Positions 5,801 to 64,000 of a stretch of DNA of 64,000 nt are shown here, in pieces. Within the stretch, counting starts at the first letter, position 1; every line of letters begins with the position of its first letter. A program made the position numbers and the translations under genes. The notes beneath the pieces are model-generated. The model saw only the letters and a program-made list of their open reading frames with translations, searched no databases and was not told where the DNA came from. Origin of the DNA: Macrostomum hystrix (lineage: Eukaryota; Animalia; Platyhelminthes); the NCBI GenBank assembly GCA_950097015.1, contig CATNEN010000011.1, positions 5,580,001-5,644,000 on the forward strand. The letters are read 5' to 3'.

Positions 5801-8800
5801 AAAGATGGATAGGTGTGGATATAGATGGATAGGTGTGGATATAGATGGATAGGTGTGGATATAGATGGATAGGTGTGGATATAGATGGATAGGTGTGGAT
5901 ATAAATGGATAGGTGTGGATATAGATGGATAGGTGTGGATATAGATGGATAGGTGTGGATATAGATGGATAGGTGTGGATAAAGATGGATAGGTGTGGAT
6001 ATAGATGGGTAGGTGTGGATATAGATGGATAGGTGTGGATATAGATGGATAGGTGTGGATATAGATGGATAGGTGTGGATATAGATGGATAGGTGTGGAT
6101 ATAGATGGATAGGTGTGGATATAGATGGATAGGTGTGGATATAGATGGATAGGTGTGGATATAGATGGATAGGTGTGGATATAGATGGATAGGTGTGGAT
6201 ATAGATGGATAGGTGTGGATATAGATGGATAGGTGTGGATATAGATGGATAGGTGTGGATATAGATGGGTAGGTGTGGATATAGATGGATAGGTGTGGAT
6301 ATAGATGGATAGGTGTGGATATAGATGGATAGGTGTGGATATAGATGGATAGGTGTGGATATAGATGGATAGGTGTGGATATAGATGGATAGGTGTGGAT
6401 ATAGATGGATAGGTGTGGATATAGATGGATAGGTGTGGATATAGATGGGTAGGTGTGGATATAGATGGATAGGTGTGGATATAGATGGATAGGTGTGGAT
6501 ATAGATGGGTAGGTGTGGATATAGATGGATAGGTGTGGATATAGATGGATAGGTGTGGATATAGATGGATAGGTGTGGATATAGATGGATAGGTGTGGAT
6601 AAAGATGGATAGGTGTGGATATAGATGGGTAGGTGTGGATATAGATGGATAGGTGTGGATAAAGATGGATAGGTCTGGATATAGATGGGTAGGTGTGGAT
6701 ATAGATGGATAGGTGTGGATATAGATGGGTAGGTGTGGATATAGATGGATAGGTGTGGATAAAGATGGATAGGTCTGGATATAGATGGGTAGGTGTGGAT
6801 ATAGATGGATAGGTGTGGATATAGATGGATAGGTGTGGATATAGATGGATAGGTGTGGATATAGATGGATAGGTGTGGATATAGATGGATAGGTGTGGAT
6901 ATAGATGGGTAGGTGTGGATATAGATGGATAGGTGTGGATAAAGATGGATAGGTCTGGATATAGATGGGTAGGTGTGGATATAGATGGATAGGTGTGGAT
7001 ATAGATGGATAGGTCTGGATATAGATGGATAGGTGTGGATATAGATGGGTAGGTGTGGATATAGATGGATAGGTGTGGATATAGATGGATAGGTGTGGAT
7101 ATAGATGGATAGGTGTGGATATAGATGGATAGGTGTGGATAAAGATGGATAGGTGTGGATATAGATGGGTAGGTGTGGATATAGATGGATAGGTGTGGAT
7201 AAAGATGGATAGGTCTGGATATAGATGGGTAGGTGTGGATATAGATGGATAGGTGTGGATATAGATGGGTAGGTGTGGATATAGATGGATAGGTGTGGAT
7301 AAAGATGGATAGGTCTGGATATAGATGGGTAGGTGTGGATATAGATGGATAGGTGTGGATATAGATGGATAGGTCTGGATATAGATGGATAGGTCTGGAT
7401 ATAGATGGATAGGTCTGGATATAGATGGATAGGTGTGGATATAGATGGGTAGGTGTGGATATAGATGGATAGGTGTGGATAAAGATGGATAGGTCTGGAT
7501 ATAGATGGGTAGGTGTGGATATAGATGGATAGGTGTGGATATAGATGGATAGGTCTGGATATAGATGGATAGGTCTGGATATAGATGGATAGGTGTGGAT
7601 ATAGATTGGTAGCAAATAACGGAGATGAATTGCCCATCCCACTGAAGGGGATAATAATGCGTTAAAGAACGGAAATTGATAAAAATGAAAAGTGAGCATC
7701 GATTAAGCAATCATGCGCCCTCACGTCTTGTCGTACTCGCAGACAAAAAGATTTCCAGCGCCGCACGCTGCGATGGCGCAGCCGACCTCCCTCACGTTGG
7801 AGCCGACTAGCTGGGTGTAATGACCGCAGACAACAAAATTGAACACATTCGGCCTGTTGCACTGATTTGTAGTGAAATTGTAGGCCAGGTGCTCCATATA
7901 GAACAGGGTGACCATGTCTGAGGTGTTGGTCCTGCCGCCCAGGTACAAATTCTCGCCGAGGCCGGTGTATTCGCCGCCGTAGTTGTGCTCAAATACGCAT
8001 CGATTAGCTGCTGCCTGGGCCAGGCGTTCCAGGCGGGTGTTCCATGTCTGCGGACAGGATTTGGCGTTGAGCTTGACTGTGCTCAATCCGCGATTAGGGA
8101 TTAGGAATTGGGATTAAGGATTATCGGTTAGGAATATGGATTATGGATAAAGGATTAGGGTTTGGATTATAATTATGGGATTTTGAATATTAACTATTTA
8201 TTAAGGATTGAGGATTAGTGTTCGGGGATTGGGGTAAATGAATTGGGTTCTATGACCTGTATACTATAAGGTTTTCGTGAGTGTCAGATCGGTCTATTTA
8301 AGGGGGCGCTGCCGCGGAGGGACGAACATTCAAGGCGCGGTGAAAGTGTTCACTGCCTGACAATGAGAAAGAAAGGACAGATGTACACACCTGTGTGTGC
8401 GTGTGTGCTCTGCTCAGGAGTCAGCGAAATGGGCAGAACTGCCTCCTCGCTGGCTGCTGATCTAGTGTCACCAAATTTGATTGATTAGTAAACGGAGATG
8501 AGAGAACTGAAGTACTCAGGCAAGCTAGCTTACAAGATAGTTCATGTTTCCACCAGTGGGATAGACCGAGGTCCTGAGTCGGTTGTGAGTGTTGAGTGTT
8601 TCAACTTTCTGCTCAGGCGTGAGCACAAGACAGTCAGCTAGATTCATTAGGCTGGACAGGAGAAGCAGACAGACCGGGAATCGAACACAGGACCTCAGCC
8701 TGTTGTCCTCGTTGGACCTATAAAAAAGGAAATTGTAAAAACAAAGGTTGTGTTTCATGTTCTCAAAAAATTTTGAGAAAATAGGGACTTTTTAAACTTA

Positions 8801-16214: not shown

Positions 16215-18562
16215 AAGTGGGAGAGTAAAGGGGAGAGAGAGTGGGAGAGTAAAGGGGAGAGAGAGTAGGAGAGTAAAGGGGAGAGAGTGTGGGAGAGTAA
16301 AGGAGAGAGAGAGTGGGAGAGTAAAGGGGAGAGAGAGTGGGAGAGTAAAGGAGAGAGAGAGTGTGCGAGTAAAGGGGAGAGAGAGTGGGATATTAAAGGG
16401 GAGAGAGAGTAGGAGGGTAAAGGAGAGAGAGTGGGAGAGTAAAGGAGAGAGAGAGTGAGAGAGTAAAGGAGAGAGAGAGTGGGAGAGTAAAGGAGAGAGA
16501 GAGTGAGAGAGTAAAGGAGAGAGAGAGTGGGAGAGTAAAGGAGAGAGAGAGTGGGAGAGTAAAGGAGAGAGAGAGTGGGAGAGTAAAGGAGAGAGAGAGT
16601 GGGAGAGTAAAGGGGAGAGAGAGTGGGAGAGTAAAGGGGAGAGAGAGTGGGAGAGTAAAGGAGAGAGAGAGTGTGCGAGTAAAGGGGAGAGAGAGTGGGA
16701 TATTAAAGGGGAGAGAGAGTAGGAGGGTAAAGGAGAGAGAGTGGGAGAGTAAAGGAGAGAGAGTGGGAGACTAAAGGGGAGAGAGAGTGGGAGGGTAAAG
16801 GAGAGATAGTGGGAGAGTAAAGGAGAGAGAGAGTGAGAGAGTAAAGGAGAGAGAGAGTGGGAGAGTAAAGGAGAGAGAGAGTGGGAGAGTAAAGGGGAAA
16901 GAGATTGAGAGAGTAAAGGAGAGAGAGTGGGAGAGTAAAGGAGAGAGAGAATGGGAGAGTAAAGGGGAGAGAGAGTGGGAGGGTAAAGGAGAGATAGTGG
17001 GAGACTAAAGGGGAGAGAGAGTGGGAGGGTAAAGGAGAGATAGTGGGAGAGTAAAGGAGAGAGAGAGTGAGAGAGTAAAGGAGAGAGAGAGTGGGAGAGT
17101 AAAGGAGAGAGAGAGTGGGAGAGTAAAGGGGAAAGAGATTGAGAGAGTAAAGGGGAGAGAGAGTGGGAGAGTAAAGGAGAGAGAGAATGGGAGAGTAAAG
17201 GGGAGAGAGAGTGGGAGGGTAAAGGAGAGATAGTGGGAGAGTAAAGGAGAGAGAGAGTAGGAGAGTAAAGGGGAGAGAGAGTGGGAGAGTAAAGGAGAGA
17301 GAGAGTGGGAGAGTAAAGGGGAGAGAGAGTGGGAGAGTAAAGGAGAGAGAGAGTGGGAGAGTAAAGAAGAGAGAGGGTGGGAGAGTAAAGGGGAGAGAGA
17401 TTGAGAGAGTAAAGGAGAGAGAGTAGGAGAGTAAAGGAGAGAGAGTGGGAGAGTAAAGGAGAGAGAGAATGGGAGAGTAAAGGGGAGAGAGAGTGGGAGG
17501 GTAAAGGAGAGATAGTGGGAGAGTAAAGGAGAGAGAGAGTAGGAGAGTAAAGGGGAGAGAGAGTGGGAGAGTAAAGGAGAGAGAGAGTGGGAGAGTAAAG
17601 GGGAGAGAGAGTGGGAGAGTAAAGGAGAGAGAGAGTGGGAGAGTAAAGGGGAGAGAGAGTGGGAGAGTAAAGGAGAGAGAGAGTGTGAGAGTAAATGGGA
17701 GAGGGAGTGGGAGATTAAAGGGGAGAGAGAGTAGGAGGGTAAAGGAGAGAGAGTGGGAGAGTAAAGGAGAGAGAGAGTAGGAGAGTAAAGGGGAGAGAGA
17801 GTGGGAGAGTAAAGGGGAGAGAGAGTGGGAGAGTAAAGGAGAGAGAGTGGGAGAGTAAAGGAGAGAGAGAGTGGGAGAGTAAAGGGGAGAGAGAGTGGGA
17901 GAGTAAAGGGGAGAGAGAGTGGGAGAGTAAAGGAGAGAGAGAGTGTGCGAGTAAAGGGGAGAGAGAGTGGGATATTAAAGGGGAGAGAGAGTAGGAGGGT
18001 AAAGGAGAGAGAGTGGGAGAGTAAAGGAGAGAGAGTGGGAGAGTAAAGGAGAGAGAGTGGGAGACTAAAGGGGAGAGAGAGTGGGAGGGTAAAGGAGAGA
18101 TAGTGGGAGAGTAAAGGAGAGAGAGAGTGAGAGAGTAAAGGAGAGAGAGAGTGGGAGAGTAAAGGAGAGAGAGAGTGGGAGAGTAAAGGGGAAAGAGATT
18201 GAGAGAGTAAAGGAGAGAGAGAGTAGGAGAGTAAAGGAGAGAGAGTGGGAGAGTAAAGGAGAGAGACAATGGGAGAGTAAAGGGGAGAGAGAGTGGGAGG
18301 GTAAAGGAGAGATAGTGGGAGAGTAAAGGAGAGAGAGAGTAGGAGAGTAAAGGGGAGAGAGAGTGGGAGAGTAAAGGAGAGAGAGAGTGGGAGAGTAAAG
18401 GGGAGAGAGAGTGGGAGAGTAAAGGAGAGAGAGAGTGTGAGAGTAAATGGGAGAGGGAGTGGGAGATTAAAGGGGAGAGAGAGTAGGAGGGTAAAGGAGA
18501 GAGAGTGGGAGAGTAAAGGAGAGAGAGAGAGTAGGAGAGTAAAGGAGAGAGAGTGGGAGAGT
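16215..18562. repeat. 20-24-bp GA-rich minisatellite (GTGGGAGAGTAAAGGAGAGAGA)
   Basis: Tandem array. Confidence 0.97.
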
Positions 18563-26445: not shown

Positions 26446-27109
26446 TCTGTCCCCATTGTTCACTTCATTGTCTCATGAATACTATTGTAATAAAATATAA
26501 TTTGCTGCCTCTGTTTACTCATTATTTTTTATGTACTACAAAGTATTCGTATGCTAAAATGGTATAACCAATAGTATTTAAACTTTAACAGTTGACATTT
26601 GCTTTGAAATCTACTTTTTAGTTTACCTGGAGTATTGGAATGTACTTTTTTAAAGTCTCGAACAGAGGTCCTGAGCTCGAATCCCGCAGACGAGCTTTCT
26701 ACTCGTAAAGCAATAACTAAAAGCTTGAGTCTCGAGTCGTAAACAAGTACTCGTAAACAAATTGGTCTCAAACGAAGACACGCGTACAAAATCCCACCCT
26801 AAAGTTCACACGTGCAAGGACATGCCTCACAAGGATGCGGCTGTAAACTAATTCTTACCGGGAACAATTTATGACTGTTATCTGTTTGTAAAGCTACACC
26901 CAAGTCTGAAATTTTTCTCACGATCTGGGAGCAAAAACCCGTGATTTTAAAGCGATTCCAAATTAGGAAATGTGTCGAAGGATTTGCGTGGGAAACGTTC
27001 AATACCAGCATTTCTCCCATGAGTCGTTCTGAAATAAAAAAGCTAAATTTAAACCTTCATAAGCATACATTTTTTTAATTTACGATTCTTTGAAAGTGTG
27101 TTTATGTGA

Positions 27110-30100
27110 ATGAAGGATTCTGTGGCTCTAGGATTCTGTGAATGCGGAATTCTGTGAATGTGGGATTCTGTGAATAAAGGATTCTGTGGCTGTAGGATTC
27201 TGTGAATGCGGGATTCTGTGAATGTGTGATTATGTGAATGAAGGATTCTGTGGCTGTAGGATTCTGTGAATGCGGGATTCTGTGAATGAAGGATTCTGTG
27301 AATGAAGGATTCTGTGAATGTGTGATTATGTGAATGAAGGATTCTGTGAATGCGGGATTCTGTGAATGTGGGATTCTGTGAATGTGGGATTTTGTGAATG
27401 TGTGATTCTGTGAATGCGGGATTCCGTGAAATCGGATTCTGTGAATGTGAGATTCTGTGAATGTGGGATTCTGTGAATTTGAGATTCTGTGAATATGGGA
27501 TTCTGTGAATGTGGGATTTTGTGAATGAAGGATTCTGTGAATGTGGGATTTTGTGAATGTGTGATTCTGTGAATGCGGGATTCTGTGAAATCGGATTCTG
27601 TGAATGTGAGATTCTGTGAATGTGGGATTCTGTGAATATGGGATTCTGTGAATGCGGGATTCTGTGAATGTGGGATTCTGTGAATGTGAGATTCTGTGAA
27701 TGTGGGATTCTGTGAATGTGGGATTTTGTGAATGAAGGATTCTGTGAATGTGGGATTTTGTGAATGTGTGATTCTGTGAATGTGGGATTCTGTGAAATCG
27801 GATTCTGTGAATGTGAGATTCTGTGAATGTGGGATTCTGTGAATGTGAGATTCTGTGAATATGGGATTCTGTGAATGTGGGATTTTGTGAATGAAGGACT
27901 CTGTGAATGTTGGATTTTGTGAATGTGTGATTCTGTGAATGCGGGATTCTGTGAAATCGGATTCTGTGAATGTGAGATTCTGTGAATGTGAGATTCTGTG
28001 AATATGGGATTCTGTGAATGTGGGATTCTGTGAATGTGAGATTCTGTGAATGTGAGATTCTGTGAATGTGTGATTCTGTGAATGCGGGATTCTGTGAAAT
28101 CGGATTCCGTGAATGTGTGATTATGTGAATGAAGGATTCTGTGGCTGTAGGATTCTGTGAATGCGGGATTCTGTGAATGTGGGATTCTGTGAATGCGGGA
28201 TTCTGTGAATGAAGGATTCTGTGAATGAAGGATTTTGTGAATGAAGGATTTTGTGAATGTGTGATTATGTGAATGAAGGATTCTGTGAATGCGGGATTCT
28301 GTGAATGCGGGATTCTGTGAATGTGGGATTTTGTGAAATCGGATTCTGTGAATGTGAGATTCTGTGAATGTGGGATTCTGTGAATTTGAGATTCTGTGAA
28401 TATGGGATTCTGTGAATGTGGGATTTTGTGAATGAAGGATTCTGTGAATGTGGGATTTTGTGAATGTGTGATTCTGTGAATGCGGGATTCTGTGAAATCG
28501 GATTCTGTGAATGTGAGATTCTGTGAATGTGGGATTCTGTGAATATGGGATTCTGTGAATGCGGGATTCTGTGAATGTGGGATTCTGTGAATGTGAGATT
28601 ATGTGAATGTGGGATTCTGTGAATGAAGGATTCTGTGAATGAAGGATTTTGTGAATGTGTGATTTTGTGAATGTGTGATTATGTGAATGAAGGATTGTGT
28701 GGCTGTAGGATTCTGTGAATGCGGGATTCTGTGAATGCGGAATTCTGTGAATGTGGGATTCTGTGAATAAAGGATTCTGTGGCTGTAGGATTCTGTGAAT
28801 GCGGGATTCTGTGAATGTGTGATTATGTGAATGAAGGATTCTGTGGCTGTAGGATTCTGTGAATGCGGGATTCTGTGAATGAAGGATTCTGTGAATGAAG
28901 GATTCTGTGAATGTGTGATTATGTGAATGAAGGATTCTGTGAATGCGGGATTCTGTGAATGTGGGATTCTGTGAATGTGGGATTTTGTGAATGTGTGATT
29001 CTGTGAATGCGGGATTCCGTGAAATCGGATTCTGTGAATGTGAGATTCTGTGAATGTGGGATTCTGTGAATTTGAGATTCTGTGAATATGGGATTCTGTG
29101 AATGTGGGATTTTGTGAATGAAGGATTCTGTGAATGTGGGATTTTGTGAATGTGTGATTCTGTGAATGCGGGATTCTGTGAAATCGGATTCTGTGAATGT
29201 GAGATTCTGTGAATGTGGGATTCTGTGAATATGGGATTCTGTGAATGCGGGATTCTGTGAATGTGGGATTCTGTGAATGTGAGATTCTGTGAATGTGGGA
29301 TTCTGTGAATGTGGGATTTTGTGAATGAAGGATTCTGTGAATGTGGGATTTTGTGAATGTGTGATTCTGTGAATGTGGGATTCTGTGAAATCGGATTCTG
29401 TGAATGTGAGATTCTGTGAATGTGGGATTCTGTGAATGTGAGATTCTGTGAATATGGGATTCTGTGAATGTGGGATTTTGTGAATGAAGGACTCTGTGAA
29501 TGTTGGATTTTGTGAATGTGTGATTCTGTGAATGCGGGATTCTGTGAAATCGGATTCTGTGAATGTGAGATTCTGTGAATGTGAGATTCTGTGAATATGG
29601 GATTCTGTGAATGTGGGATTCTGTGAATGTGAGATTCTGTGAATGTGAGATTCTGTGAATGTGTGATTCTGTGAATGCGGGATTCTGTGAAATCGGATTC
29701 CGTGAATGTGTGATTATGTGAATGAAGGATTCTGTGGCTGTAGGATTCTGTGAATGCGGGATTCTGTGAATGTGGGATTCTGTGAATGCGGGATTCTGTG
29801 AATGAAGGATTCTGTGAATGAAGGATTTTGTGAATGAAGGATTTTGTGAATGTGTGATTATGTGAATGAAGGATTCTGTGAATGCGGGATTCTGTGAATG
29901 CGGGATTCTGTGAATGTGGGATTTTGTGAAATCGGATTCTGTGAATGTGAGATTCTGTGAATGTGGGATTCTGTGAATTTGAGATTCTGTGAATATGGGA
30001 TTCTGTGAATGTGGGATTTTGTGAATGAAGGATTCTGTGAATGTGGGATTTTGTGAATGTGTGATTCTGTGAATGCGGGATTCTGTGAAATCGGATTCTG

Positions 30101-31918
30101 TGAATGTGAGATTCTGTGAATGTGGGATTCTGTGAATATGGGATTCTGTGAATGCGGGATTCTGTGAATGTGGGATTCTGTGAATGTGAGATTATGTGAA
30201 TGTGGGATTCTGTGAATGAAGGATTCTGTGAATGAAGGATTTTGTGAATGTGTGATTTTGTGAATGTGTGATTATGTGAATGAAGGATTGTGTGGCTGTA
30301 GGATTCTGTGAATGCGGGATTCTGTGAATGTGGGATTATGTGAATGTGTGATTATGTGAATGAAGGATTCTGTGAATGAAGGATTTTGTGAATGAAGGAT
30401 TTTGTGAATGTGTGATTATGTGAATGAAGGATTCTGTGGCTGTAGGATTCTGTGAATGCGGGATTCTGTGAATGAAGGATTCTGTGAATGAAGGATTTTG
30501 TGAATGTGTGATTATGTGAATGAAGGATTCTGTGAATGCGGGATTCTGTGAATGTGGGATTCTGTGAATGTGGGATTTTGTGAATGTGTGATTCTGTGAA
30601 TGCGGGATTCCGTGAAATCGGATTCTGTGAATGTGAGATTCTGTGAATGTGGGATTCTGTGAATTTGAGATTCTGTGAATATGGGATTCTGTGAATGTGG
30701 GATTTTGTGAATGAAGGATTCTGTGAATGTGGGATTTTGTGAATGTGTGATTCTGTGAATGCGGGATTCTGTGAAATCGGATTCTGTGAATGTGAGATTC
30801 TGTGAATGTGGGATTCTGTGAATATGGGATTCTGTGAATGCGGGATTCTGTGAATGTGGGATTCTGTGAATGTGAGATTCTGTGAATGTGGGATTCTGTG
30901 AATGTGGGATTTTGTGAATGAAGGATTCTGTGAATGTGGGATTTTGTGAATGTGTGATTCTGTGAATGTGGGATTCTGTGAAATCGGATTCTGTGAATGT
31001 GAGATTCTGTGAATGTGGGATTCTGTGAATGTGAGATTCTGTGAATATGGGATTCTGTGAATGTGGGATTTTGTGAATGAAGGATTCTGTGAATGTTGGA
31101 TTTTGTGAATGTGTGATTCTGTGAATGCGGGATTCTGTGAAATCGGATTCTGTGAATGTGAGATTCTGTGAATGTGGGATTCTGTGAATATGGGATTCTG
31201 TGAATGTGGGATTCTGTGAATGTGAGATTCTGTGAATGTGAGATTCTGTGAATGTGTGATTGTGTGAATGCGGGATTCTGTGAAATCGGATTCCGTGAAT
31301 GTGTGATTATGTGAATGAAGGATTCTGTGGCTGTAGGATTCTGTGAATGCGGGATTCTGTGAATGTGGGATTATGTGAATGTGGGATTCTGTGAATGAAG
31401 GATTCTGTGAATGAAGGATTTTGTGAATGAAGGATTTTGTGAATGTGTGATTATGTGAATGAAGGATTCTGTGAATGCGGGATTCTGTGAATGCGGGATT
31501 CTGTGAATGTGGGATTTTGTGAAATCGGATTCTGTGAATGTGAGATTCTGTGAATGTGGGATTCTGTGAATTTGAGATTCTGTGAATATGGGATTCTGTG
31601 AATGTGGGATTTTGTGAATGAAGGATTCTGTGAATGTGGGATTTTGTGAATGTGTGATTCTGTGAATGCGGGATTCTGTGAAATCGGATTCTGTGAATGT
31701 GAGATTCTGTGAATGTGGGATTCTGTGAATATGGGATTCTGTGAATGTGGGATTCTGTGAATGTGAGATTCTGTGAATGTGAGATTCTGTGAATGTGTGA
31801 TTCTGTGAATGCGGGATTCTGTGAAATCGGATTCCGTGAATGTGGGATTTTGTGAATGTGGGATTCCGTGAATGTGGGATTCTGTGAATGTGTGATTATG
31901 AGAAGTGGGATTCTGTGA
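27110..31918. repeat. 16-bp satellite (GGGATTCTGTGAATGT), about 300 units, with a 1593-bp higher-order repeat
   Basis: Rare variants recur exactly 1593 bp apart (GCGGAATT 27144/28737; GGACT 27897/29490; AAGGATTG 28690/30283). Confidence 0.98.
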
Positions 31919-34705: not shown

Positions 34706-37700
34706 TTAGAGTTGCGTAGGCGAGACGCCACCGCCGCCGCTAGGGTGTTGCCTTCGTTGGTCCTCCTGTCTGACGCGATGCTGAATGATTCGCTCGGCTT
34801 TGATGACATTCGCCTGCGAACCGCTGATGGTCACGACCCGGTTCCTGGTGTGCGGCTGGTACTCACCGCGCTTGGACACCTGGGAGTGTGGCGTCAGTTA
34901 GGGAAATTCAACTTGCACTTTTGGGAGAACATTTACTTGATGCTGCATATTCACGACAGCTTAGAAAACTTAAAATCTCACCCACACACCTATTGACAGA
35001 CCCTTAATCTCACCCCAAACACCTATTGACAGGTTATTAATCTCACATTCAAACCTATTGACAGGTCCTTAATCTCACCTTCAAACCTATTGACAGGTTA
35101 TTAATCTCACATTCAAACCTATTGACAGGTCCTTAATCTCACCTTCAAACCTATTGACAGGTCCTTAATATCACATTCAAACCTATTGATAGGTCCTTAA
35201 TATCACATTCAAACCTATTGACAGGTCCTTAATATCACATTCAAACCTATTGACAGGTCCTTAATCTCACATTCAAACCTATTGACAGGTTATTAATCTC
35301 ACCTTCAAACCTATTGACAGGTTATTAATCTCACATTCAAACCTAGTGACAGGTCCTTAATCTCACCTTCAAACCTATTGACAGGTCCTTAATATCACAT
35401 TCAAACCTATTGACAGGTTATTAATCTCACCTTCAAACCTATTGACAGGTCCTTAATATCACATTCAAACCTATTGACAGGTTATTAATCTCACCTTCAA
35501 ACCTATTGACAGGTTATAAATCTCACATTCAAACCTATTGACAGGTCCTTAATCTCACCTTCAAACATATTGACAGGTCCTTAATATCACCTCACACACC
35601 TATTGACAGGTCCTTAATCTCACCCCAAACCTATTGACAGGTCCTTAATCTCACATTCAAACCTATTGACAGATCCTTAATCTTACCCCAAACACCTATT
35701 GACAGGTCCTTAATCTCACCCCAAACGCCTATTGACAGGTCCTTAATCTCACCCCAAACACCTATTGACAGGTCCTTAATCTCACCTTCAAACCGATTGA
35801 CAGGTCCTTAATCTCACCCCACACACCTATTGACAGGTCCTTAATCTCACCCCACACACCTATTGACAGGTCCTTAATCTCACCCTTAACACCTATTGAC
35901 AGGTCCTTAATCTCACATTCAAACCGATTGACAGGTCCTTAATCTCACCCCACACACCTATTGACAGGTCCTTAATATCACCCCACACACCTATTGACAG
36001 GTCCTTAATCTCACCCCACACACCTATTGACAGGTCCTTAATCTCACCCCACACACCTATTGACAGGTCCTTAATATCACCCTAAACACCTATTGACAGG
36101 TCCTTTATCTCACCCCACACACCTATTGACAGGTTCAAGCCACAAAGCACTCACCTGAATGTTAGTCTGTGTATTAGTCTGCAATTCGGCAATATCCTTG
36201 CCGCCGGGTCCGATGACAACGCCAACCAGAGCTTCGGGAATCTCCAGTTCGCGCTTGAACTGAACAGACGAATCAACCCAGGATGGCTGGCCGGCGATGG
36301 TTGCAGATGCGGCTGCACCGCCAATGGTCTGGGGCGGCTGGGGCATCGGCCCGGGGGTGGTCGGATAAACGAACGCGTCGGCGCCGGCGAACGAGCCACT
36401 ATAATCGGCGTTAGCAGCGGCGGCGGCGGCGGCTGCGGCAGCTGCTGCGGCGGCGGCGGCCGCAGCTGGATCAGCTGAGAGCGGCATCAGGGCTGACAAT
36501 GAGCCGTGAGACAGATTAAAAGAAGAATGAGGCGATTGCAATAGGGGCACAGCGCCGGCGGCTCCGCCAGCTGTTGGCGGCGGCCCAGGCGAGATGATGG
36601 CAGCAGGCGGAGGCGGCTGATTCTGTGAGCCGAGCGACTGCAGGTTGAAGAACCCATAATTAGCCAGGGTGAGCATGGCGCTAATGATGTCATCCGCGGC
36701 CAGATCCGAATAGCCGCTCTGCCTCAGGGAAGCTCGGAGAGCATCCAGCGAGATTGAACCGGCCGCGGCGCCGAATGAGCAGGCGGAGTTTTGAGACGAA
36801 TTCAAGCTCAAAGGACCGCCGCCGCCGCCAACTCCTCCACCTCCGCCGAGTCCGCTAAGTTGCAAATCGTTGAATCCACCGCCGCTGGCACCCTGAGGCG
36901 AGGAAGCTGAACTGCCGACTCCGCCGTGGACCAGTGCGTAGGGACTGCCTGTGGGGTAGGCGCTGGCCACTGGGCCGCTGATGTTGGCATAGCTGATGTT
37001 CGGGCAGCTGGCTGACTGAGGGTCCTCGGCAATCTTAGCCAGGATCATTGCCGCGGCAGCCCGGTTCTGCTCCGGATCGCCGGCCACCGTCACGCAGCGC
37101 TCCGTCAGGGCCTGCTCCTTCGGCTTCTGGGAGATCTGCACGTAGGCGCCGCTTGCCTCCATGATCTCCTTGATGAAGGCGCCTTTCTTGCCAATGATCA
37201 TGCCAGCTGTGCTGTTAGGTACCAGAATCTTCAGCTGCATGAGTGATAAGTCAGGACGATGCCTGATTAGCGTATCATCCAAAATATTGGTACAACATGG
37301 ATTTGACTGGGATTTCAGTAGAGTAGGATTGGGATTTCAGTATATTAGGATTGGGATTTCAGTAGAGTAGGATTGGGATTTCAGTAGAGTAGGATTGGGA
37401 TTACAGTAGAATAGGATCGGGATTTTAGTAGATTAGGATTGGGATTACAGTATATTAGGATTGGGATTTCAGTAGAGTAGGATTGGGATTTCAGTAGAGT
37501 AGGATTGGGATTTCAGTATATTAGGATTGGGATTTCAGTAGAGTAGGATTGGGATTTCAGTAGAGTAGGATTGGGATTACAGTAGAATAGGATCGGGATT
37601 TTAGTAGATTAGGATTGGGATTACAGTAGAATAGGATCGGGATTTTAGTAGATTAGGATTGGGATTACAGTAGAATAGGATCGGGATTTTAGTAGATTAG

Positions 37701-54565: not shown

Positions 54566-57500
54566 CTACAGCTCGCCCTGAGACCGGGGGCTGTTCATGA
54601 GACTGTTTAGTCCGGCGCGCGCTTCCTCCAGATTAATTCGAGCCTGGTGCAGCATTTCGGCGGAGGCACTGCGGGCAGCAAGGTGACGTTTTGGGTGGCT
54701 TAAAATCGGACGAAAGTCTGAAAAACTTGAAAATACATTCAATTTTCTGACAAACATGTAGACAACAGGTGACTCCAATATGTTGTCATTGTGTTTGTAC
54801 GGTTAAGGGATCCTGTTTAACACGTCGGGCGTCGTGTCTAACAGGTATGACGTCATGTCTAACAGATAATGCGCCTTCTCTAACATGTAAAGTGTCGTGC
54901 CTAACAGGTAATGAGTCCTATCTAACAGATAATGCGTCCTGTCCAAACAGGTAAAGTGTCATGTATAACACGTAAAGGTTCGTATCTAACAGACAAGGCA
55001 TTGTGTCAAACAAGGTAAGGCGTCCTTTCTCGGAAGTAAGGCATTCCGTTTAACAGATAAGGTGTCGTGTCTAACAGGTAATGCATAGTGTCTAACAGGT
55101 AAGGTCAGACGTCGTGTCTAACAGGTAAGACGTCATGTCCAACAGGTGGGTAAATTCACCTGTTTGTGGGCTCCATGTTGCGTGGCCTATCAACAGGCAC
55201 CTGCATCTGCCTGTAGCTTTGCCGAAGTTGTCGCAGGTCCTCGTCCACGCTCTGCGCAAAGTTCAGTGGCAAATATAAAAAAATTAATGTGAGAGTTTAG
55301 CATATTAATTCGCGTTCTGAATAAAATTTCGTCTCTCAAAACAATTAGTTCAAAAAGAAATGTTTGCAGTTGTCAAATTTTAATGTGAATTTTAGTATAT
55401 TTACAATTACATGCATCTGGCTAACTCAAACTAGATTCGTTAGTTACTGCAAAAGCTACAAATATATGAAGAACAAATGCTATTGCAATCCGAATCGCAA
55501 TTGGATTGTAGAATTAAAGGAAAATTTAATTTAAAAAAGCTACGACGGTTAATGAAACGACTATGTGTCTGACTCTAGCACTAATGGTATTGAGTTCGAA
55601 TCCGTGCCTAAGAATCAACAGTTTGACTGTTGGCGATGAGAAATTCAGGGCAGATGTACACACCTGTGTGACTTAATGAGCGCGTGTGGGTCGTCATATC
55701 ATACACCGGTGTCCGCAGCTCATTACTGTTTTGTTAGAATTTAGTGCAAAGTTGTTAGCGCTAGGACAACCAAGAACAAAATCAGCAGGTATTCTAAGGC
55801 CGACAGATGTGAAAAAAGTTTGTTCTTGAATTTTGTGTGTTCGGAGCAAATAAAAATGTTCAAGGTAGGTTGTTCTACTGTTAATGGTTCGTACGTTAAG
55901 TCCTCAATCTTATTTTTGAAGAACAAACAGTTTTATTAAGTAGACTTTAGTTCAAACGTCTCTGCACATGTTAATGATCAAGACTTGGTTGTTAATATTT
56001 TGTTAGTCAATTCTGTTTTTCAATTTCCGATCGCATTGCGCTAAGTCAGCGCTGACAAAACCTACACGCGGCTGCAGCTGTCCCCTGTTTCTGTTGGCTG
56101 TCACCAGAGCCGACGCCACAATCTGGCAGTTAATTTTATATGGGCACAATGCGGTCACAAACGTTGGGTCATGATACAATTATGCAATTTTTTCAGTACC
56201 TCCCAAATTATTCAACCAATCACCATGAAAATCCTGACAACTGGTTAACATTTTCCGCTCTATCCGATGACAGAACTTCCAGAATCACAAAACATCAGCT
56301 TCGTCGATATATTCAACGATTCTCGTCGGGGCGGCTGGTGACAAGAACCACAAAAGACATACTTTTTCAGCTCACAAAATTTCATAATGTAATCATGTCA
56401 ATTTTTTCAGATGGTGGAGTTAGTAGGCAGTGGGTATTTGAAATACCCCGGTGGTTTTTTCCCAGGGGGAAAATAGTGGTCTTACTACTGTTAACTATTT
56501 AGCTAGATTGAAAGCAACAGAAAATGTTGGCTGTAACGTAGCTGAAGCGTAAATCAATTAGGAGCAACGATAGCAAGCATTCAAGCTATCAATCAGTCTT
56601 GCGAATATGAAATGTACAAAGCAAATAATTGGCATGAATTTAGACATAAATATGTCGCCAGTAAAGAAAGAAGTAATCTCATCGCGGAAATGCTTCTAAA
56701 CAAGCTCCTCACGACCTGAAGAAACTCACCTGGCTGATTCGAGCCGAGCGATTCAGCGCATCCAAGGCAGACTCAGTCCGGATGGCCGGCCGGCCTTCCC
56801 TGTCCAGATAGGAACCCGCTGCGGCCGCTGGACGACGTGGCAGTCGCGGAGGTCGCGGAACTGCTGCTGCTGGCGAAGCTGAAGCTCCAGGTGTTGATCT
56901 CGGCGATTGGCGGTAATCCTCGACACTGGCGGAGGAGCCGGACCGCGCATATTCGGGTACAGTGGTCGCTGATGATGTCGGAGCGGCTGTCGTAGCCGAT
57001 GCGGTGGCCTGGGGCACTGAAGCTCCCTGAACGATGTTCGGTCGTAGAAGCTTGCTCCGCTCGGCAGTCAGCTTGCGAGCGAGCTCGGACGCACCGGAGC
57101 CGCTGGCGGACGCGCGCGACCCTGCCATTTGGCACTGCGCAAGCAGCCGGGTGGACTCCAGCTGAGAATTAGCGAACTGGCGCTCGCGCTTGAACATTTC
57201 CATCTGGGTGCGAAATTCTTCATTGCGAATCTCCGTTCTCACCTGGCTGCCGCGAGGTGGAATCGGCTGCTGGCCTGCAGACGTAGTAGAATGAGTTTGG
57301 GTTGGTGGTGGACGCGAGCGCGCCGGAGCTCGGTGTACAGTTGTGCGCACAGAAGCGGCAACTTCGATGTTGCGCTGCGACATCTCTGGCTGTGGCTCCG
57401 GAGACGAAGGTCGTGATTGCTCCGGTGAACTATCAACTGTCGCCAGAAGCAGATCAGTTTGACCACGGATGTAGTTTAGCTGCGCCTCAACCATCTCCTC

Positions 57501-60500
57501 CCAGGTGCGGCATCGGTTGAGGTCCAACATGATTAGATCTCTCACAAACCGATCCGATCGAGGAGTGCCCGTCTCAGCATCAGTGGACACGGAAATTTCC
57601 CTAGTGCGGCGCTGAGGAACCTGAGGTTGGGCAGCATCCCTGGGCCTGCCAACAACCAAGGCGTCGATGTGTTCTACAGAACGCGATCGAACCAGCTGAG
57701 ATTCAGAGCCACTAAGTGATGGCGGCAGGCGAGCGAGATCACGAGAAGATTGCGACTGCCGCTCGCTGAAGGGCTGACAACTATTAGGAACAGACAAGGA
57801 GACCGGATCGGCCGCCGTAGTCTCATCAGAATCAGCCAGGCTATCCGGAATGGATAAGGCAGGAACCATTCGTGACGGCTCCGAGACCCCGTCAGGCACG
57901 GAAGCGAACGATGTCCGCCTGGTGGTATCGACAGGCAGATTTTGCATAGACTGGGACAACCGCGTCGCATCCTCCCACTGTTCATTCTCATCACGAACGG
58001 CAGGTGAATCTGTTTGGGTAGCAGACTCAACTAAGGGCATCCTAAGTGCAGGAACAAGTAAAGAATATGTTTGAAGACTCGCAACAGACGGAATGTGAAC
58101 CGGGTCGACCGCATTCGCAGCACGGTCCATCACGGCCTCACTCGGGCATTTCACCTCCTTGACGGCTTGGGCCACCTTGCCCAGAGCGTCTAGCTGCTCA
58201 GCCGTCATCGTGTCGCCGGCCTTCTTGCTCTCCAGGGCGCTCAGCACTGCCAGAGCGGAACTAGCGTCTGCTTCACTAATTCCGAGGCTCTCCGGATTCT
58301 CTTCCAGAACCTTCTTCATGGCTTCACTGCTGGCAGCGAGATCTTCGGCCTGCTTTTCACTCAGCTTCTTGTCTTTGCCGTCGCCAGCGAGACAAGACAG
58401 CGCCTTCAGTTTGCTGGCTGCCTGGCCGACCTCTTCCACAGCGGCGTCCTTCTCTGCCTCACTCGGCGACTTGGACGACTCGGCTTCCTTCTTTTTCGTC
58501 TTGTCAGTCTTCTTCTTTTTTTTGGAGAGCTGAGCGAGCGCCAAGCCGAGCTGCTTCTTTTCAGCGTCCGACAGAGCGTCCAACGGCTTGTCCTTGACGC
58601 TGTGTAGCAGCGCTGCAAGCACTGCCTTTTCCTCCTCGCTGAGTCCACTGTCACCAGAAGCGAGCACGTCATCGATCGCATTCACTGCCTCACTGACCGC
58701 ATTTCGCTCGGATTCAGTTAGTTCGGCAGCCCTGCTTCCGCGACGCTTCAGCACGTTCTCAGCCAGCTTTAATGCGTCTCGAGCGTTCTCATCTAGACCG
58801 GCCTTCTCTGCAGCACTCTTCTCTAATGGACCATCCGATGCCTTTTGCAGTGCATCTCTCAGAGCGGCCTGCTCCTCTGGAGTCAGTGCAACAGTCTTGC
58901 CACTCTGCTCGGCGTCCTCCACCTTCTTCATCGCCTGAGCCAATGCACCTGTCTCGTCAGCAGCAGCGTCTAGGGACTTCTGAAGGGCTTTAGCAATGCC
59001 CTTTGCCGTCTCGGCGTCGACCTGTCCGTCCGTCTTCGCCAGATCCGACAGCGCCTCCTTGCTTGCATCAGCCTGCTTCACCTGCTCTAGGCTCTCCTCG
59101 ACGGCCTTGGCTACCTTGCCCAGAGCGTCTAGCTGCTCAGCCGTCATCGTGTCGCCGGCCTTCTTGCTCTCCAGGGCGCTCAGCACTGCCAGAGCGGAAC
59201 TAGCGTCTGCTTCACTAATTCCGAGGCTCTCCGGATTCTCTTCCAGAACCTTCTTCAAGGCTTCACTGCTGGCAGCGAGATCTTCGGCCTGCTTTTCACT
59301 CAGCTTCTTGTCTTTGCCGTCGCCAGCGAGCCAAGACAGCGCCTTCAGTTTGCTGGCTGCCTGGCCGACCTCTTCCACAGCGGCGTCCTTCTCTGCCTCA
59401 CTCGGCGACTTGGACGACTCGGCTTCCTTCTTTTTCGTCTTGACAGTCTTCTTCTTTTTCTTGGAGAGCTGAGCGAGCGCCTTGCCGAGCTGCTTCTTTT
59501 CAGCGTCCGACAGAGCGTCCAACGGCTTGTCCTTGACGCTGTGTAGCAGCGCTGCAAGCACTGCCTTTTCCTCCTCGCTGAGTCCACTGTCACCAGAAGC
59601 GAGCACGTCATCAATCGCATTCACTGCCTCACTGACCGCATTTCGCTCGGATTCAGTTAGTCCGGCAGCCTTGCTTCCGCGACGCTTCAGCACGTTCTCA
59701 GCCAGCTTTAATGCGTCTCGAGCGTTCTCATCTAGACCGGCCTTCTCTGCAGCACTCTTCTCTAATGGACCATCCGATGCCTTTTGCAGTGCATCTCTCA
59801 GAGCGGCCTGCTCCTCTGGAGTCAGTGCAACAGTCTTGCCACTCTGCTCGGCGTCCTCCACCTTCTTCATCGCCTGAGCCAATGCACCTGTCTCGTCAGC
59901 AGCAGCGTCTAGGGACTTCTGAAGGGCTTTAGCAATGCCCTTTGCCGTCTCGGCGTCGACCTGTCCGTCCGTCTTCGCCAGATCCGACAGCGCGTCCTTG
60001 CTTGCATCAGCATGCTTCACCTGCTCTAGGCTCTCCTCGACGGCCTTGGCTACCTTGCCCAGAGCGTCTAGCTGCTCAGCCGTCATCGTGTCGCCGGCCT
60101 TCTTGCTCTCCAGGGCGCTCAGCACTGCCAGAGCGGAACTAGCGTCTGCTTCACTAATTCCGAGGCTCTCCGGATTCTCTTCCAGAACCTTCTTCATGGC
60201 TTCACTGCTGGCAGCGAGATCTTCGGCCTGCTTTTCACTCAGCTTCTTGTCTTTGCCGTCGCCAGCGAGACAAGACAGCGCCTTCAGTTTGCTGGCTGCC
60301 TGGCCGACCTCTTCCACAGCGGCGTCCTTCTCTGCCTCACTCGGCGACTTGGACGACTCGGCTTCCTTCTTTTTCGTCTTGTCAGTCTTCTTCTTTTTCT
60401 TGGAGAGCTGAGCGAGCGCCTTGCCGAGCTGCTTCTTTTCAGCGTCCGACAGAGCGTCCAACGGCTTGTCCTTGACGCTGTGTAGCAGCGCTGCAAGCAC

Positions 60501-63500
60501 TGCCTTTTCCTCCTCGCTGAGTCCACTGTCACCAGAAGCGAGCACGTCATCGATCGCATTCACTGCCTCACTGACCGCATTTCGCTCGGATTCAGTTAGT
60601 TCGGCAGCCCTGCTTCCGCGACGCTTCAGCACGTTCTCAGCCAGCTTTAATGCGTCTCGAGCGTTCTCATCTAGACCGGCCTTCTCTGCAGCACTCTTCT
60701 CTAATGGACCATCCGATGCCTTTTGCAGTGCATCTCTCAGAGCGGCCTGCTCCTCTGGAGTCAGTGCAACAGTCTTGCCACTCTGCTCGGCGTCCTCCAC
60801 CTTCTTCATCGCCTGAGCCAATGCACCTGTCTCGTCAGCAGCAGCGTCTAGGGACTTCTGAAGGGCTTTAGCAATGCCCTTTGCCGTCTCGGCGTCGACC
60901 TGTCCGTCCGTCTTCGCCAGATCCGACAGCGCCTCCTTGCTTGCATCAGCCTGCTTCACCTGCTCTAGGCTGTCCTTGACGGCTTGGGCCACCATGCCCA
61001 GAGCGTCTAGCTGCTCAGCCGTCATCGTGTCGCCGGCCTTCTTGCTCTCCAGGGCGCTCAGCACTGCCAGAGCGGAACTAGCGTCTGCTTCACTAATTCC
61101 GAGGCTCTCCGGATTCTCTTCCAGAACCTTCTTCATGGCTTCACTGCTGGCAGCGAGATCTTCGGCCTGCTTTTCACTCAGCTTCTTGTCTTTGCCGTCG
61201 CCAGCGAGATAAGACAGCGCCTTCAGTTTGCTGGCTGCCTGGCCGACCTCTTCCACAGCGGCGTCCTTCTCTGCCTCACTCGGCGACTTGGACGACTCGG
61301 CTTCCTTCTTTTTCGTCTTGTCAGTCTTCTTCTTTTTCTTGGAGAGCTGAGCGAGCGCCTTGCCGAGCTGCTTCTTTTCAGCGTCCGACAGAGCGTCCAA
61401 CGGCTTGTCCTTGACGCTGTGTAGCAGCGCTGCAAGCACTGCCTTTTCCTCCTCGCTGAGTCCACTGTCACCAGAAGCGAGCACGTCATCGATCGCATTC
61501 ACTGCCTCACTGACCGCATTTCGCTCGGATTCAGTTAGTTCGGCAGCCTTGCTTCCGCGACGCTTCAGCACGTTCTCAGCCAGCTTTAATGCGTCTCGAG
61601 CGTTCTCATCTAGACCGGCCTTCTCTGCAGCACTCTTCTCTAATGGACCATCCGATGCCTTTTGCAGTGCATCTCTCAGAGCGGCCTGCTCCTCTGGAGT
61701 CAGTGCAACAGTCTTGCCACTCTGCTCGGCGTCCTCCACCTTCTTCATGGCCTGAGCCAATGCACCTGTCTCGTCAGCAGCAGCGTCTAGGGACTTCTGA
61801 AGGGCTTTAGCAATGCCCTTTGCCGTCTCGGCGTCGACCTGTCCGTCCGTCTTCGCCAGATCCGACAGCGCCTCCTTGCTTGCATCAGCCTGCTTCACCT
61901 GCTCTAGGCTCTCCTCGACGGCCTTGGCTACCTTGCCCAGAGCGTCTAGCTGCTCAGCCGTCATCGTGTCGCCGGCCTTCTTGCTCTCCAGGGCGCTCAG
62001 CACTGCCAGAGCGGAACTAGCGTCTGCTTCACTAATTCCGAGGCTCTCCGGATTCTCTTCCAGAACCTTCTTCAAGGCTTCACTGCTGGCAGCGAGATCT
62101 TCGGCCTGCTTTTCACTCAGCTTCTTGTCTTTGCCGTCGCCAGCGAGCCAAGACAGCGCCTTCAGTTTGCTGGCTGCCTGGCCGACCTCTTCCACAGCGG
62201 CGTCCTTCTCTGCTTCACTCGGCGACTTGGACGACTCGGCTTCCTTCTTTTTCGTCTTGTCAGTCTTCTTCTTTTTCTTGGAGAGCTGAGCGAGCGCCTT
62301 GCCGAGCTGCTTCTTTTCAGCGTCCGACAGAGCGTCCAACGGCTTGTCCTTGACGCTGTGTAGCAGCGCTGCAAGCACTGCCTTTTCCTCCTCGCTGAGT
62401 CCACTGTCACCAGAAGCGAGCACGTCATCAATCGCATTCACTGCCTCACTGACCGCATTTCGCTCGGATTCAGTTAGTCCGGCAGCCTTGCTTCCGCGAC
62501 GCTTCAGCACGTTCTCAGCCAGCTTTAATGCGTCTCGAGCGTTCTCATCTAGACCGGCCTTCTCTGCAGCACTCTTCTCTAATGGACCATCCGATGCCTT
62601 TTGCAGTGCATCTCTCAGAGCGGCCTGCTCCACTGGAGTCAGTGCAACAGTCTTGCCACTCTGCTCGGCGTCCTCCACCTTCTTCATCGCCTGAGCCAAT
62701 GCACCTGTCTCGTCAGCAGCAGCGTCTAGGGACTTCTGAAGGGCTTTAGCAATGCCCTTTGCCGTCTCGGCGTCGACCTGTCCGTCCGTCTTCGCCAGAT
62801 CCGACAGCGCCTTCTTGCTTGCATCAGCCTGCTTCACCTGCTCTAGGCTCTCCTCGACGGCCTTGGCTACCTTGCCCAGAGCGTCTAGCTGCTCAGCCGT
62901 CATCGTGTCGCCGGCCTTCTTGCTCTCCAGGGCGCTCAGCACTGCCAGAGCGGAACTAGCGTCTGCTTCACTAATTCCGAGGCTCTCCGGATTCTCTTCC
63001 AGAACCTTCTTCAAGGCTTCACTGCTGGCAGCGAGATCTTCGGCCTGCTTTTCACTCAGCTTCTTGTCTTTGCCGTCGCCAGCGAGCCAAGACAGCGCCT
63101 TCAGTTTGCTGGCTGCCTGGCCGACCTCTTCCACAGCGGCGTCCTTCTCTGCCTCACTCGGCGACTTGGACGACTCGGCTTCCTTCTTTTTCGTCTTGTC
63201 AGTCTTCTTCTTTTTCTTGGAGAGCTGAGCGAGCGCCTTGCCGAGCTGCTTCTTTTCAGCGTCCGACAGAGCGTCCAACGGCTTGTCCTTGACGCTGTGT
63301 AGCAGCGCTGCAAGCACTGCCTTTTCCTCCTCGCTGAGTCCACTGTCACCAGAAGCGAGCACGTCATCGATCGCATTCACTGCCTCACTGACCGCATTTC
63401 GCTCGGATTCAGTTAGTTCGGCAGCCTTGCTTCCGCGACGCTTCAGCACGTTCTCAGCCAGCTTTAATGCGTCTCGAGCGTTCTCATCTAGACCGGCCTT

Positions 63501-64000
63501 CTCTGCAGCACTCTTCTCTAATGGACCATCCGATGCCTTTTGCAGTGCATCTCTCAGAGCGGCCTGCTCCTCTGGAGTCAGTGCAACAGTCTTGCCACTC
63601 TGCTCGGCGTCCTCCACCTTCTTCATCGCCTGAGCCAATGCACCTGTCTCGTCAGCAGCAGCGTCTAGGGACTTCTGAAGGGCTTTAGCAATGCCCTTTG
63701 CCGTCTCGGCGTCGACCTGTCCGTCCGTCTTCGCCAGATCCGACAGCGCCTCCTTGCTTGCATCAGCCTGCTTCACCTGCTCTAGGCTCTCCTCGACGGC
63801 CTTGGCTACCTTGCCCAGAGCGTCTAGCTGCTCAGCCGTCATCGTGTCGCCGGCCTTCTTGCTCTCCAGGGCGCTCAGCACTGCCAGAGCGGAACTAGCG
63901 TCTGCTTCACTAATTCCGAGGCTCTCCGGATTCTCTTCCAGAACCTTCTTCAAGGCTTCACTGCTGGCAGCGAGATCTTCGGCCTGCTTTTCACTCAGCT
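54566..64000 (-). CDS. Giant tandem-repeat protein (5'-incomplete): exon of at least 7.27 kb (64000-56730) with more than 6 x 313-aa repeats, then exons 55251-55160 and 54668-54566
   Basis: Stop-free ORF of more than 2400 codons, including about 475 non-repetitive codons; donor CAG|GTGAGT at 56730; downstream exons SVDEDLRQLRQSY.. and ASAEMLHQARINLEE..* join in phase (0, 2). Confidence 0.85.
54820..55150. repeat. Degenerate ~23-bp repeat (GTGTCTAACAGGTAA) in the last intron of the giant gene
   Basis: Recurring tctaacaggta. Confidence 0.8.
55585..55672 (+). mobile_element. Degenerate SINE family A fragment
   Basis: GAGTTCGAATCC B-box plus GATGAGAAATTCAGGGCAGATGTACACACCTGTG. Confidence 0.5.
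58159..64000 (-). repeat. 939-bp coding tandem repeat, about 6.2 copies in the window, continuing beyond it
   Basis: Homologous positions recur every 939 bp (58996, 59935, 60874, 61813, 62752) with only a few substitutions. Confidence 0.98.

Follow-up and report, generated by a model that had tools for sequence, protein, structure and literature searches.

A giant gene of the flatworm Macrostomum hystrix predicted to encode 44 near-identical helical repeats of 313 residues

The 64,000-nucleotide stretch of the Macrostomum hystrix genome that was analysed here in full (hereafter the window; C11:5580001-5644000, where C11 denotes full-contig coordinates on contig CATNEN010000011.1) ends inside a long tandem array that, when followed into the adjoining DNA, turns out to be the core of what its sequence indicates to be a real, single-copy, protein-coding gene with a 44-unit product predicted from the assembly (hereafter the giant gene and the giant protein). 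The predicted product consists of approximately 15,977 amino acids (aa), or about 1.7 MDa, not counting six extra bases that are discussed below, and appears to belong to no described protein family. Taking all the evidence together, we favour, with slightly better than even confidence, the explanation that this is a giant helical-repeat gene of the Macrostomum lineage that is maintained by selection and encodes a predicted string of small helical bundles.

From position 58155 to the end of the window, the DNA is a 939-bp direct repeat with an exact spacing of 939 bp and 98-99% identity between the copies, and the minus strand carries the only long reading frame across the array, such that 939 bp translate into 313 aa. 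A preliminary description of the window had reported near-identical 313-aa units rich in Ala, Glu, Lys, Ser, Leu and Asp, without stating the strand, in more than six copies continuing past the window end, and both statements hold. Examination of 70 kb past the window end revealed an array of 44 full units and a 225-nt partial unit, 41,547 bp altogether with the far end at C11:5679701, that is, approximately 7 times the part inside the window (6.2 units). The array is a single locus, no copies of the repeat having been found elsewhere in the M. hystrix genome when this was searched.

The gene in its entirety is not single-exon, as had been proposed, because a splice donor lies at the end of the tail that follows the array and three small 3' exons come after it; the array itself is contained within one exon. 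The 3' exons were located by searching the tail of the homolog from Macrostomum lignano against the window, exon by exon, and all three have canonical AG/GT borders, which brings the gene to at least four coding exons. The features inside the window are the following.

58155 to 64000, minus strand: the 3'-most 6.2 units of the array, delineated by repeat spacing and translation.
58488 to 58523, minus strand: the polylysine patch KKKKKTDKTKKK of the last unit, one such patch being present per unit.
56730 to 58154, minus strand: the non-repeat C-terminal tail of 475 aa, rich in Ser, Ala, Arg and Pro, ending in ...ARISQ and followed by the GTGAGT donor at 56729-56724.
56066 to 56122, minus strand: a small coding exon of 19 aa, IVASALVTANRNRGQLQPR, lying between a CAG acceptor and a GTAGGT donor and found by homology to M. 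lignano.
55160 to 55251, minus strand: a small coding exon of 30 codons and 2 bases, SVDEDLRQ...MEPTN, preceded by a CAG acceptor and followed by a GTGAAT donor.
54566 to 54668, minus strand: the last coding exon, 1 base and 33 codons, ...NSPRSQGEL, with a TAG stop at 54568-54566.

The 5' end, retrieved from the adjoining DNA as the preliminary description had proposed, shows that the frame stays open upstream of the array through a non-repeat region until an in-frame stop at C11:5684508, with the first in-frame ATG at C11:5684417-5684415. The giant exon thus delimited spans approximately 47.7 kb and encodes an N-terminal region of 1,572 aa, the array in full and the 475-aa C-terminal tail. 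The predicted protein begins with about 470 disordered residues rich in Ser, Pro, Arg, Gln and Ala, followed by a unique, mostly helical region of about 640 aa, two degenerate units and the 44 regular units, and it ends in a largely disordered tail of about 560 aa with conserved short blocks, among those kept in M. lignano being RRTREISVSTDAETGTPRS and a helical block around IMLDLNRCRTWEEM. Both ends are rich in Ser and Arg and contain RRxRxxS-like motifs. A signal peptide is absent behind the first in-frame ATG, hydropathy over the initial 60 aa peaking at 0.04, and a convincing membrane segment is likewise absent from the protein, the most hydrophobic 19-residue window scoring 1.84 and including two Pro. 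A polypyrimidine/AG splice acceptor is located 33 nt upstream of the ATG, and the mRNA may either be trans-spliced at this acceptor or include a 5' exon.

This arrangement of the 5' end bears on the possibility that the protein is a secreted or granule product (of a gland, rhabdite, adhesive or seminal kind) with its signal peptide on an unrecognised 5' exon, which we consider the least probable of the alternatives weighed here. Such a product would have company, given that Macrostomum makes other giant repetitive secreted proteins, Mlig-ap1 and Mlig-ap2 (PMC6410801), and there is room for it in the DNA, with a strong acceptor just ahead of the ATG and approximately 7 kb of unassigned sequence up to the upstream gene. 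Against it stand the lack of a signal peptide at the first in-frame ATG, the nearly Cys-free units that, unlike the adhesive proteins, contain no vWD, EGF, TSP1 or lectin domains, and the disordered, Ser/Arg-rich ends with their RRxRxxS-like motifs, which are typical of cytoplasmic or nuclear proteins.

Does the giant gene have relatives? A HMMER search of 1.84 billion representative proteins, with a 1,200-aa query taken from the N-terminal region, yielded two matches, both just to the degenerate-unit part, the unique 888 aa of the query finding nothing in the same search. The first match is M. lignano PAA77137.1 (hypothetical protein BOX15_Mlig008056g1, UniProt A0A267FVN1), a 1,320-aa protein made of 2.2 units of 308 aa and a tail, with 58-61% identity to M. 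hystrix in the units and 60% in the tail (BLASTP E-values 3e-88 for the unit and 1e-148 for the tail). The collinear succession of units and unique tail, together with the identical three-exon 3' structure, identifies the giant gene, at the level of sequence comparison, as the ortholog of BOX15_Mlig008056g1. In M. lignano, the array (NIVC01000762.1, L009:1-6670) comprises 7.2 units of 924 bp, 98.3-100% alike, and runs up to the contig edge; because the annotated model begins within this array, it is truncated, the 1,320 aa being no more than a stub of a protein that probably exceeds this length many times. Literature searches on the accession numbers of the M. lignano protein found no paper naming it. 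The second match, MEE4247509.1, comes from a metagenome bin labelled "Kangiellaceae bacterium"; it is incomplete, with 343 aa encoded on a contig of 1,032 bp, and contains 1.1 units with a period of 305 aa. Because a scan with the unit alignment of one genome per species for 185,579 bacterial and archaeal species detected no relative, this protein is probably mis-binned animal DNA from a third species. A scan of metagenome contigs with the unit alignment also found no relative, and in searches for homologous proteins the tail retrieved only PAA77137.1 whereas the unit retrieved nothing, its candidate list being swamped by low-complexity words. So far, the giant gene is known from the Macrostomum lineage only, as judged from these searches.

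The comparison between the two species reveals the mode of evolution of the array. The M. hystrix units differ at 43 of the 939 sites (32 variable sites being non-synonymous and 11 synonymous), fall into two haplotype classes at the unit 3' end and show a two-unit higher-order pattern in units 4-12. Between M. hystrix and M. lignano, unit identity drops to 67.6% in DNA and approximately 58% in protein. The non-synonymous and synonymous substitution rates (dN/dS) are 0.28/1.45 for the unit (a ratio of ~0.2) and 0.29/2.45 for the tail (~0.12), with dS saturated and the ratios accordingly rough; these values show, on sequence evidence, that the protein has been under purifying selection between the species. 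The near-uniformity of the units inside a species (98-99% identity), set against a protein identity of about 58% from one species to the other and a dN/dS of ~0.2, leads us to conclude from the alignments that this is concerted evolution of a functional protein, with unequal crossing-over or gene conversion keeping the units alike within each species.

The module itself seems to have a longer history. A hidden Markov model of the unit detects two degenerate copies just upstream of the array, at aa 1112-1328 and 1392-1572 of the N-terminal region, and these copies can be aligned with the unit along its entire length, with ordinary hydrophobic and aromatic residues where the core positions correspond. 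The module is therefore older than the amplification seen today, and its ancestor was probably a domain with a normal fold. The preliminary description had perceived another, still older layer, a helical repeat of about 30 aa from which the unit would have been built. A recurring pattern is there, but BLAST of the unit against itself found no internal sub-repeat, and hhalign comparison of the thirds of the unit gave E-values of 0.004-0.02 with probabilities under 10%, so the older sub-repeat is weakly suggested at best, being visible just as a recurrent pattern in the unit.

The reading frame of the array is not perfect. An alignment of the 44 units reveals six single-base insertions in five units beyond the window (5 T and 1 C on the coding strand), the affected units starting at C11:5653179, 5654119, 5655059 (two insertions), 5656000 and 5659757. 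Each insertion is private to one unit, all are +1, and they cluster mid-array, at distances of 16-26 kb from the unique sequence on either side. As a result, the frame is split into open stretches of 8,133 and 5,761 codons that are in register with the repeat, with short pieces between, some of only 170-373 codons. Elsewhere the 47.7-kb frame contains no stop, and neither the splice sites nor the tail show any damage. The insertions are very probably errors of the long-read assembly because they are all +1, private and 16-26 kb from unique anchors, because the frame is otherwise intact and the tail selected, and because the units in the M. lignano long-read assembly show similar 1-base gaps. 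At such distances from unique sequence, reads cannot be anchored and polishing is least reliable. The M. hystrix assembly was made from the inbred line SR1 with PacBio and Illumina data (PMC10468722).

Alternatively, the insertions could be real, in which case the gene would be broken, with the N-terminal region and about 20 units being made and the remaining array and tail persisting as a decaying remnant. Six +1 insertions in five units, mostly outside homopolymers and leaving such short open pieces, speak for this possibility. Yet the 5,761 codons downstream, the tail and the three 3' exons with their splice sites are free of defects, the tail shows a dN/dS of ~0.12 against M. lignano, and the private, mid-array location of the insertions as well as the M. 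lignano gaps speak in the same direction; a broken gene is, in our view, unlikely.

We now turn to the unit. The consensus contains 61 A, 42 K, 38 L, 36 E, 31 S and 25 D, a single W and a single H, and no F, Y or C, which bears out the claim of a unit nearly devoid of aromatic residues and Cys; the only Trp is replaced by Cys or Tyr in 3 of the 44 units. Leu and Val together account for 17% of the residues and are arranged in amphipathic i, i+3/4 patterns. The translation includes the ISEAD, MTAEQ, VDAET and LTPEE motifs, of a kind that had been counted at about 10 helix N-caps per unit; when capping-box-like motifs are defined as a hydrophobic residue followed by S/T/D, two arbitrary residues and E/D/Q, there are 9 per unit compared to 3.3 +/- 1.7 in shuffled units. 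The basic patch, KKKKKTDKTKKK, which had been noticed once per unit, indeed recurs every 939 bp (at 59427, 60366, 61305, 62244, 63183 and onward). Within it, K191, K192, K194, K195 and D197 are invariant in M. hystrix, in M. lignano, in MEE4247509.1 from the environmental contig and in the first of the degenerate units, and across the same four diverged sequences the Trp-region motif SWLA-DG-DK retains S233, L235, A236, D238, G239, D241, K242 and L244. The unit is acidic (isoelectric point, pI, 4.9; net charge -13, or -19 without the polylysine patch), and the most basic 15-residue window in the patch has a charge of +8.

A conserved polylysine patch on an acidic body brings up the possibility of a nuclear, chromatin- or RNA-associated scaffold, in which the 44 patches would be nuclear localisation signals or sites of nucleic acid binding. 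Apart from the likeness of KKKKKTDKTKKK to a classical basic nuclear localisation signal and its conservation, this proposal can draw on the strong acidity of the rest of the unit and on the abundance of Ser and Arg in both termini. It has to contend with the absence of any nucleic-acid-binding or chromatin domain in the Pfam scans and with a mass of ~1.7 MDa, which is unusual for nuclear import cargo, and we regard it as rather improbable; it differs from the intracellular rod that we favour below in partner and compartment alone.

What fold could such a sequence adopt? In accord with the claim of alpha-helical units, the AlphaFold2 model of two units, which was obtained with single-sequence input, is all-helical (predicted local distance difference test score, pLDDT, 72.5; predicted template modelling score, pTM, 0.36), with some 12 helices in each unit, the majority 12-20 residues long, and with low-confidence linkers spanning residues 89-100 and 198-211 of the model, the latter of which adjoins and overlaps the end of the polylysine patch. 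The comparison with known folds that had been suggested gave weak results: Foldseek against PDB with this model found no match at E <= 0.001, the best matches being vinculin and alpha-catenin at E 0.01-0.07 and template modelling (TM) scores of no more than 0.17. In an exhaustive VIA-align search, model residues 206-322 match CheA P1 (1tqg_A) at Z 9.9, with a root-mean-square deviation of 3.4 over 104 residues and 10% identity, and residues 100-207 match other four-helix bundles of approximately 100 residues at Z 7-8. AlphaFold2 modelling of aa 455-1120 of the N-terminal region gave a pLDDT of 39 and was unusable. With moderate confidence, the model suggests about 12 short amphipathic helices per unit that pack into small four-helix bundles, and probably two or three such bundles in a row make up each unit; with the same moderate confidence, the bundles would be acidic on the surface and joined by a low-confidence linker that carries the polylysine patch.

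Under a different interpretation, the units are largely disordered, or form single helices, as a polyampholyte that would function as an entropic spacer or gel former instead of a rod of domains. The dominance of Ala, Lys, Glu, Ser and Asp, with nearly no aromatic residues, fits this picture, as do the merely moderate AlphaFold2 scores and the low language-model recognition score. Against it count the regular amphipathic patterns of Leu and Val and the degenerate relatives that retain a normal hydrophobic and aromatic core at matching positions, suggestive of a folded ancestor. Furthermore, the dN/dS of ~0.2 and the many invariant non-charged positions (L, A, G, W) point beyond a mere constraint on composition, and a polyampholyte of this type appears quite improbable.

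Searches for related families are consistent in their outcome. Pfam scans of the unit, the N-terminal region, the tail and four diverged units produced nothing above the cut-off, the best entries below it being ARM_CPL3 (E 0.0023) and DUF5053 (E 0.0008). In these scans, neither the spectrin repeat (PF00435) nor the plectin repeat (PF00681) matched at E <= 1, and the same is the case for DUF1542 (PF07564), GA (PF01468) and FIVAR (PF07554). The resemblance to bacterial DUF1542/GA-type rod modules that had been pointed out accordingly dissolves, all the more so as no relative was found in the 185,579 bacterial and archaeal species; the sole Pfam entry of the bacterial-surface type is aRib at E 0.049, below its cut-off. 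Vinculin and talin profiles gave no match in Pfam and no sequence match in PDB, where the sequence-profile search retrieved only de novo designed TIM barrels, which we read as a reflection of idealised helix composition. The ESM Atlas feature search with the unit gave scores of at most 0.84 to planctomycete hypothetical proteins, which is chance level, and with the N-terminal region gave no usable match. With no described family matched in Pfam, PDB or Foldseek, the preliminary impression of an undescribed protein is upheld, and on the present sequence comparisons the giant protein belongs to no described family.

What might such a protein do? Our preferred, albeit tentative, reading, to which we assign clearly less weight than to the general explanation given at the outset, is that of an intracellular, very long modular rod, spring or spacer, with basic patches for docking and ends for anchoring, as suggested by the sequence features and the structural model. 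Under this scenario, the giant protein would act inside the cell; its 44 evenly spaced basic patches would dock on a partner that is both acidic and periodic, for instance microtubules, nucleic acid or the acidic lipids of a membrane, and its two disordered, phosphorylatable-looking ends would anchor or regulate it. The elastic rod or ruler of the preliminary description is a reasonable conjecture in keeping with this anatomy, and the locations that it named (sperm, ciliary rootlet or adhesive structure) would be purely conjectural. Doubtful still, and in our judgement somewhat less likely than the rod as such, is the more specific proposal that the ~310-aa module represents an undescribed domain family (helical bundles with a polylysine linker), in a protein that would be among the largest in animals outside the titin and adhesive classes and would serve, through its evenly spaced basic patches, as a ruler or spring peculiar to flatworms on a periodic acidic lattice such as microtubules or the membrane skeleton.

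Several considerations weigh against the explanation as a whole. The structure of the two units was predicted from a single sequence with a pTM of only 0.36, and the VIA-align scores of Z 7-9.9 are below the ~13 that helical bundles reach by chance; a sequence so rich in Ala, Lys, Glu and Ser could be partly disordered or form single helices. Patches of the KKKKK type are also classical nuclear localisation signals. The six insertions lie mostly outside homopolymers, which is unusual for polishing errors, transcription as one mRNA is predicted from sequence, and the copy number of 44 is as read in the assembly. Finally, because of the good acceptor 33 nt ahead of the ATG, there may be an upstream coding exon, possibly with a signal peptide.

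The surroundings of the giant gene deserve a brief description. Approximately 45% of window positions 1-56000 is minisatellite, with at least 20 distinct arrays with periods of 14-60 bp and Tandem Repeats Finder scores of at least 400, which accounts for blocks of extreme GC skew and for many spurious multi-frame open reading frames (ORFs) in the window. Examples are the following.

27084 to 31918: 304 copies of a 16-bp repeat.
16216 to 18562: 100 copies of a 24-bp repeat, with one purine-only strand.
5675 to 7606: 97 copies of a 20-bp repeat.

At 36110-37282 on the minus strand of the window there is a large exon that codes for a pair of KH domains (Pfam KH_1, E 3.4e-26) with low-complexity Ala/Gly/Pro sequence after them and, judging by these domains, looks like part of a gene for a Nova/PCBP-like RNA-binding protein. 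On the other side of the giant gene, its upstream neighbour on the same strand, at C11:5691517-5693884 (minus), is a separate gene with a 612-aa ORF (L006:7517-9355) that has no Pfam match and is 59% identical to an FHA domain-containing protein of M. lignano, A0A1I8HTB2; the 90% cluster of the latter also lists 42-50-aa peptides from bacterial contigs (of a DUF6198 neighbourhood), a clustering artefact. Between the two genes, approximately 150-300 nt upstream of the giant-gene ATG (L006:560-720, minus strand), there is what appears by eye to be a tRNA-derived short interspersed element on the opposite strand with a GGTTCGATTCC-type box; ARAGORN called no tRNA in this stretch.

If the giant gene is what it appears to be, a protein of about 16,000 residues that is encoded almost wholly by one 47.7-kb exon, is conserved and subject to purifying selection and falls outside the described families implies that the cell biology of Macrostomum, which serves as a model for regeneration and reproduction, includes a sizeable part so far unexplained. 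The gene escapes the current annotations, in which the M. lignano gene is represented by the 1,320-aa stub at a contig edge. The array is also a clean case of concerted evolution in a large coding repeat, with 98-100% identity within species. Should a cytoskeletal or membrane lattice turn out to be what the patches bind, the identical modules would make the protein a natural molecular ruler, one that could be useful for single-molecule mechanics.

How does the giant protein compare with known systems? As a kind, giant tandem-repeat structural proteins are already known; it is the module that is undescribed here. The closest counterpart is BOX15_Mlig008056g1 of M. lignano, which shares the unit, the tail, the three small 3' exons, the polylysine patch and the SWLA-DG-DK motif and differs in the length of the unit, 308 aa compared to 313 aa in M. 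hystrix. Also from Macrostomum are the giant secreted repetitive adhesive proteins Mlig-ap1 (5,407 aa) and Mlig-ap2 (14,794 aa), which are Cys-rich, contain vWD, TIL, EGF, C-type lectin, LDL-receptor and TSP1 domains, and are further marked by repeats of 255 aa and 221 aa (in a range of approximately 220-255 aa) or Lys/Arg-rich regions with a pI above 14 (PMC6410801). The giant protein resembles these in being giant and lineage-restricted and in having long repeat arrays, and Mlig-ap2 comes near to it in size. By their published descriptions, nevertheless, it is clearly different from both: it contains none of these domains and 0-1 Cys per unit, the pI of the unit is 4.9, the repeat is 313 aa long, and no signal peptide is seen.

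Among proteins of the cell interior, talin, vinculin and alpha-catenin bear a likeness to the predicted structure, small bundles of four or five helices following one another on flexible linkers, and were, as noted, the best if weak Foldseek matches. There is no sequence similarity to the giant protein, however; the TM scores do not exceed 0.17, and Z of 7-8 is noise level for bundles (talin VBS3, 7.5; TLNRD1, 7.1; sponge vinculin, 8.0, all under the level of ~13 for helical bundles); furthermore, these proteins possess some 5-13 different bundles and no polylysine linkers, whereas the giant protein would have about 130 near-identical ones. We rejected an identity with the histidine phosphotransfer (HPt) domain typified by CheA P1, the best VIA-align match, in which a conserved phospho-accepting His sits on an exposed helix: no His is present in the segment that matches (residues 206-322), and the unit has its single His at residue 164. 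Spectrin and the plakins offer the parallel of long intracellular rods made of tandem helical modules of approximately 100 aa. The spectrin module, though, is a ~106-aa domain of three helices of ~30 residues each, compared to helices mostly of 12-20 residues and four-helix subdomains of ~105 aa in the moderate-confidence model of the giant protein, and the spectrin repeats have diverged within one protein, in contrast to units that are 98-99% identical. In architecture, two further analogies come to mind: AHNAK, a huge intracellular protein with its repeat region of 128-aa repeats in one giant exon, and the trypanosome MARPs, in which dozens of near-identical 38-aa units are thought to bind a cytoskeletal lattice. 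Neither is related to the giant protein in sequence, and the predicted structures differ, so that the likeness is one of architecture alone.

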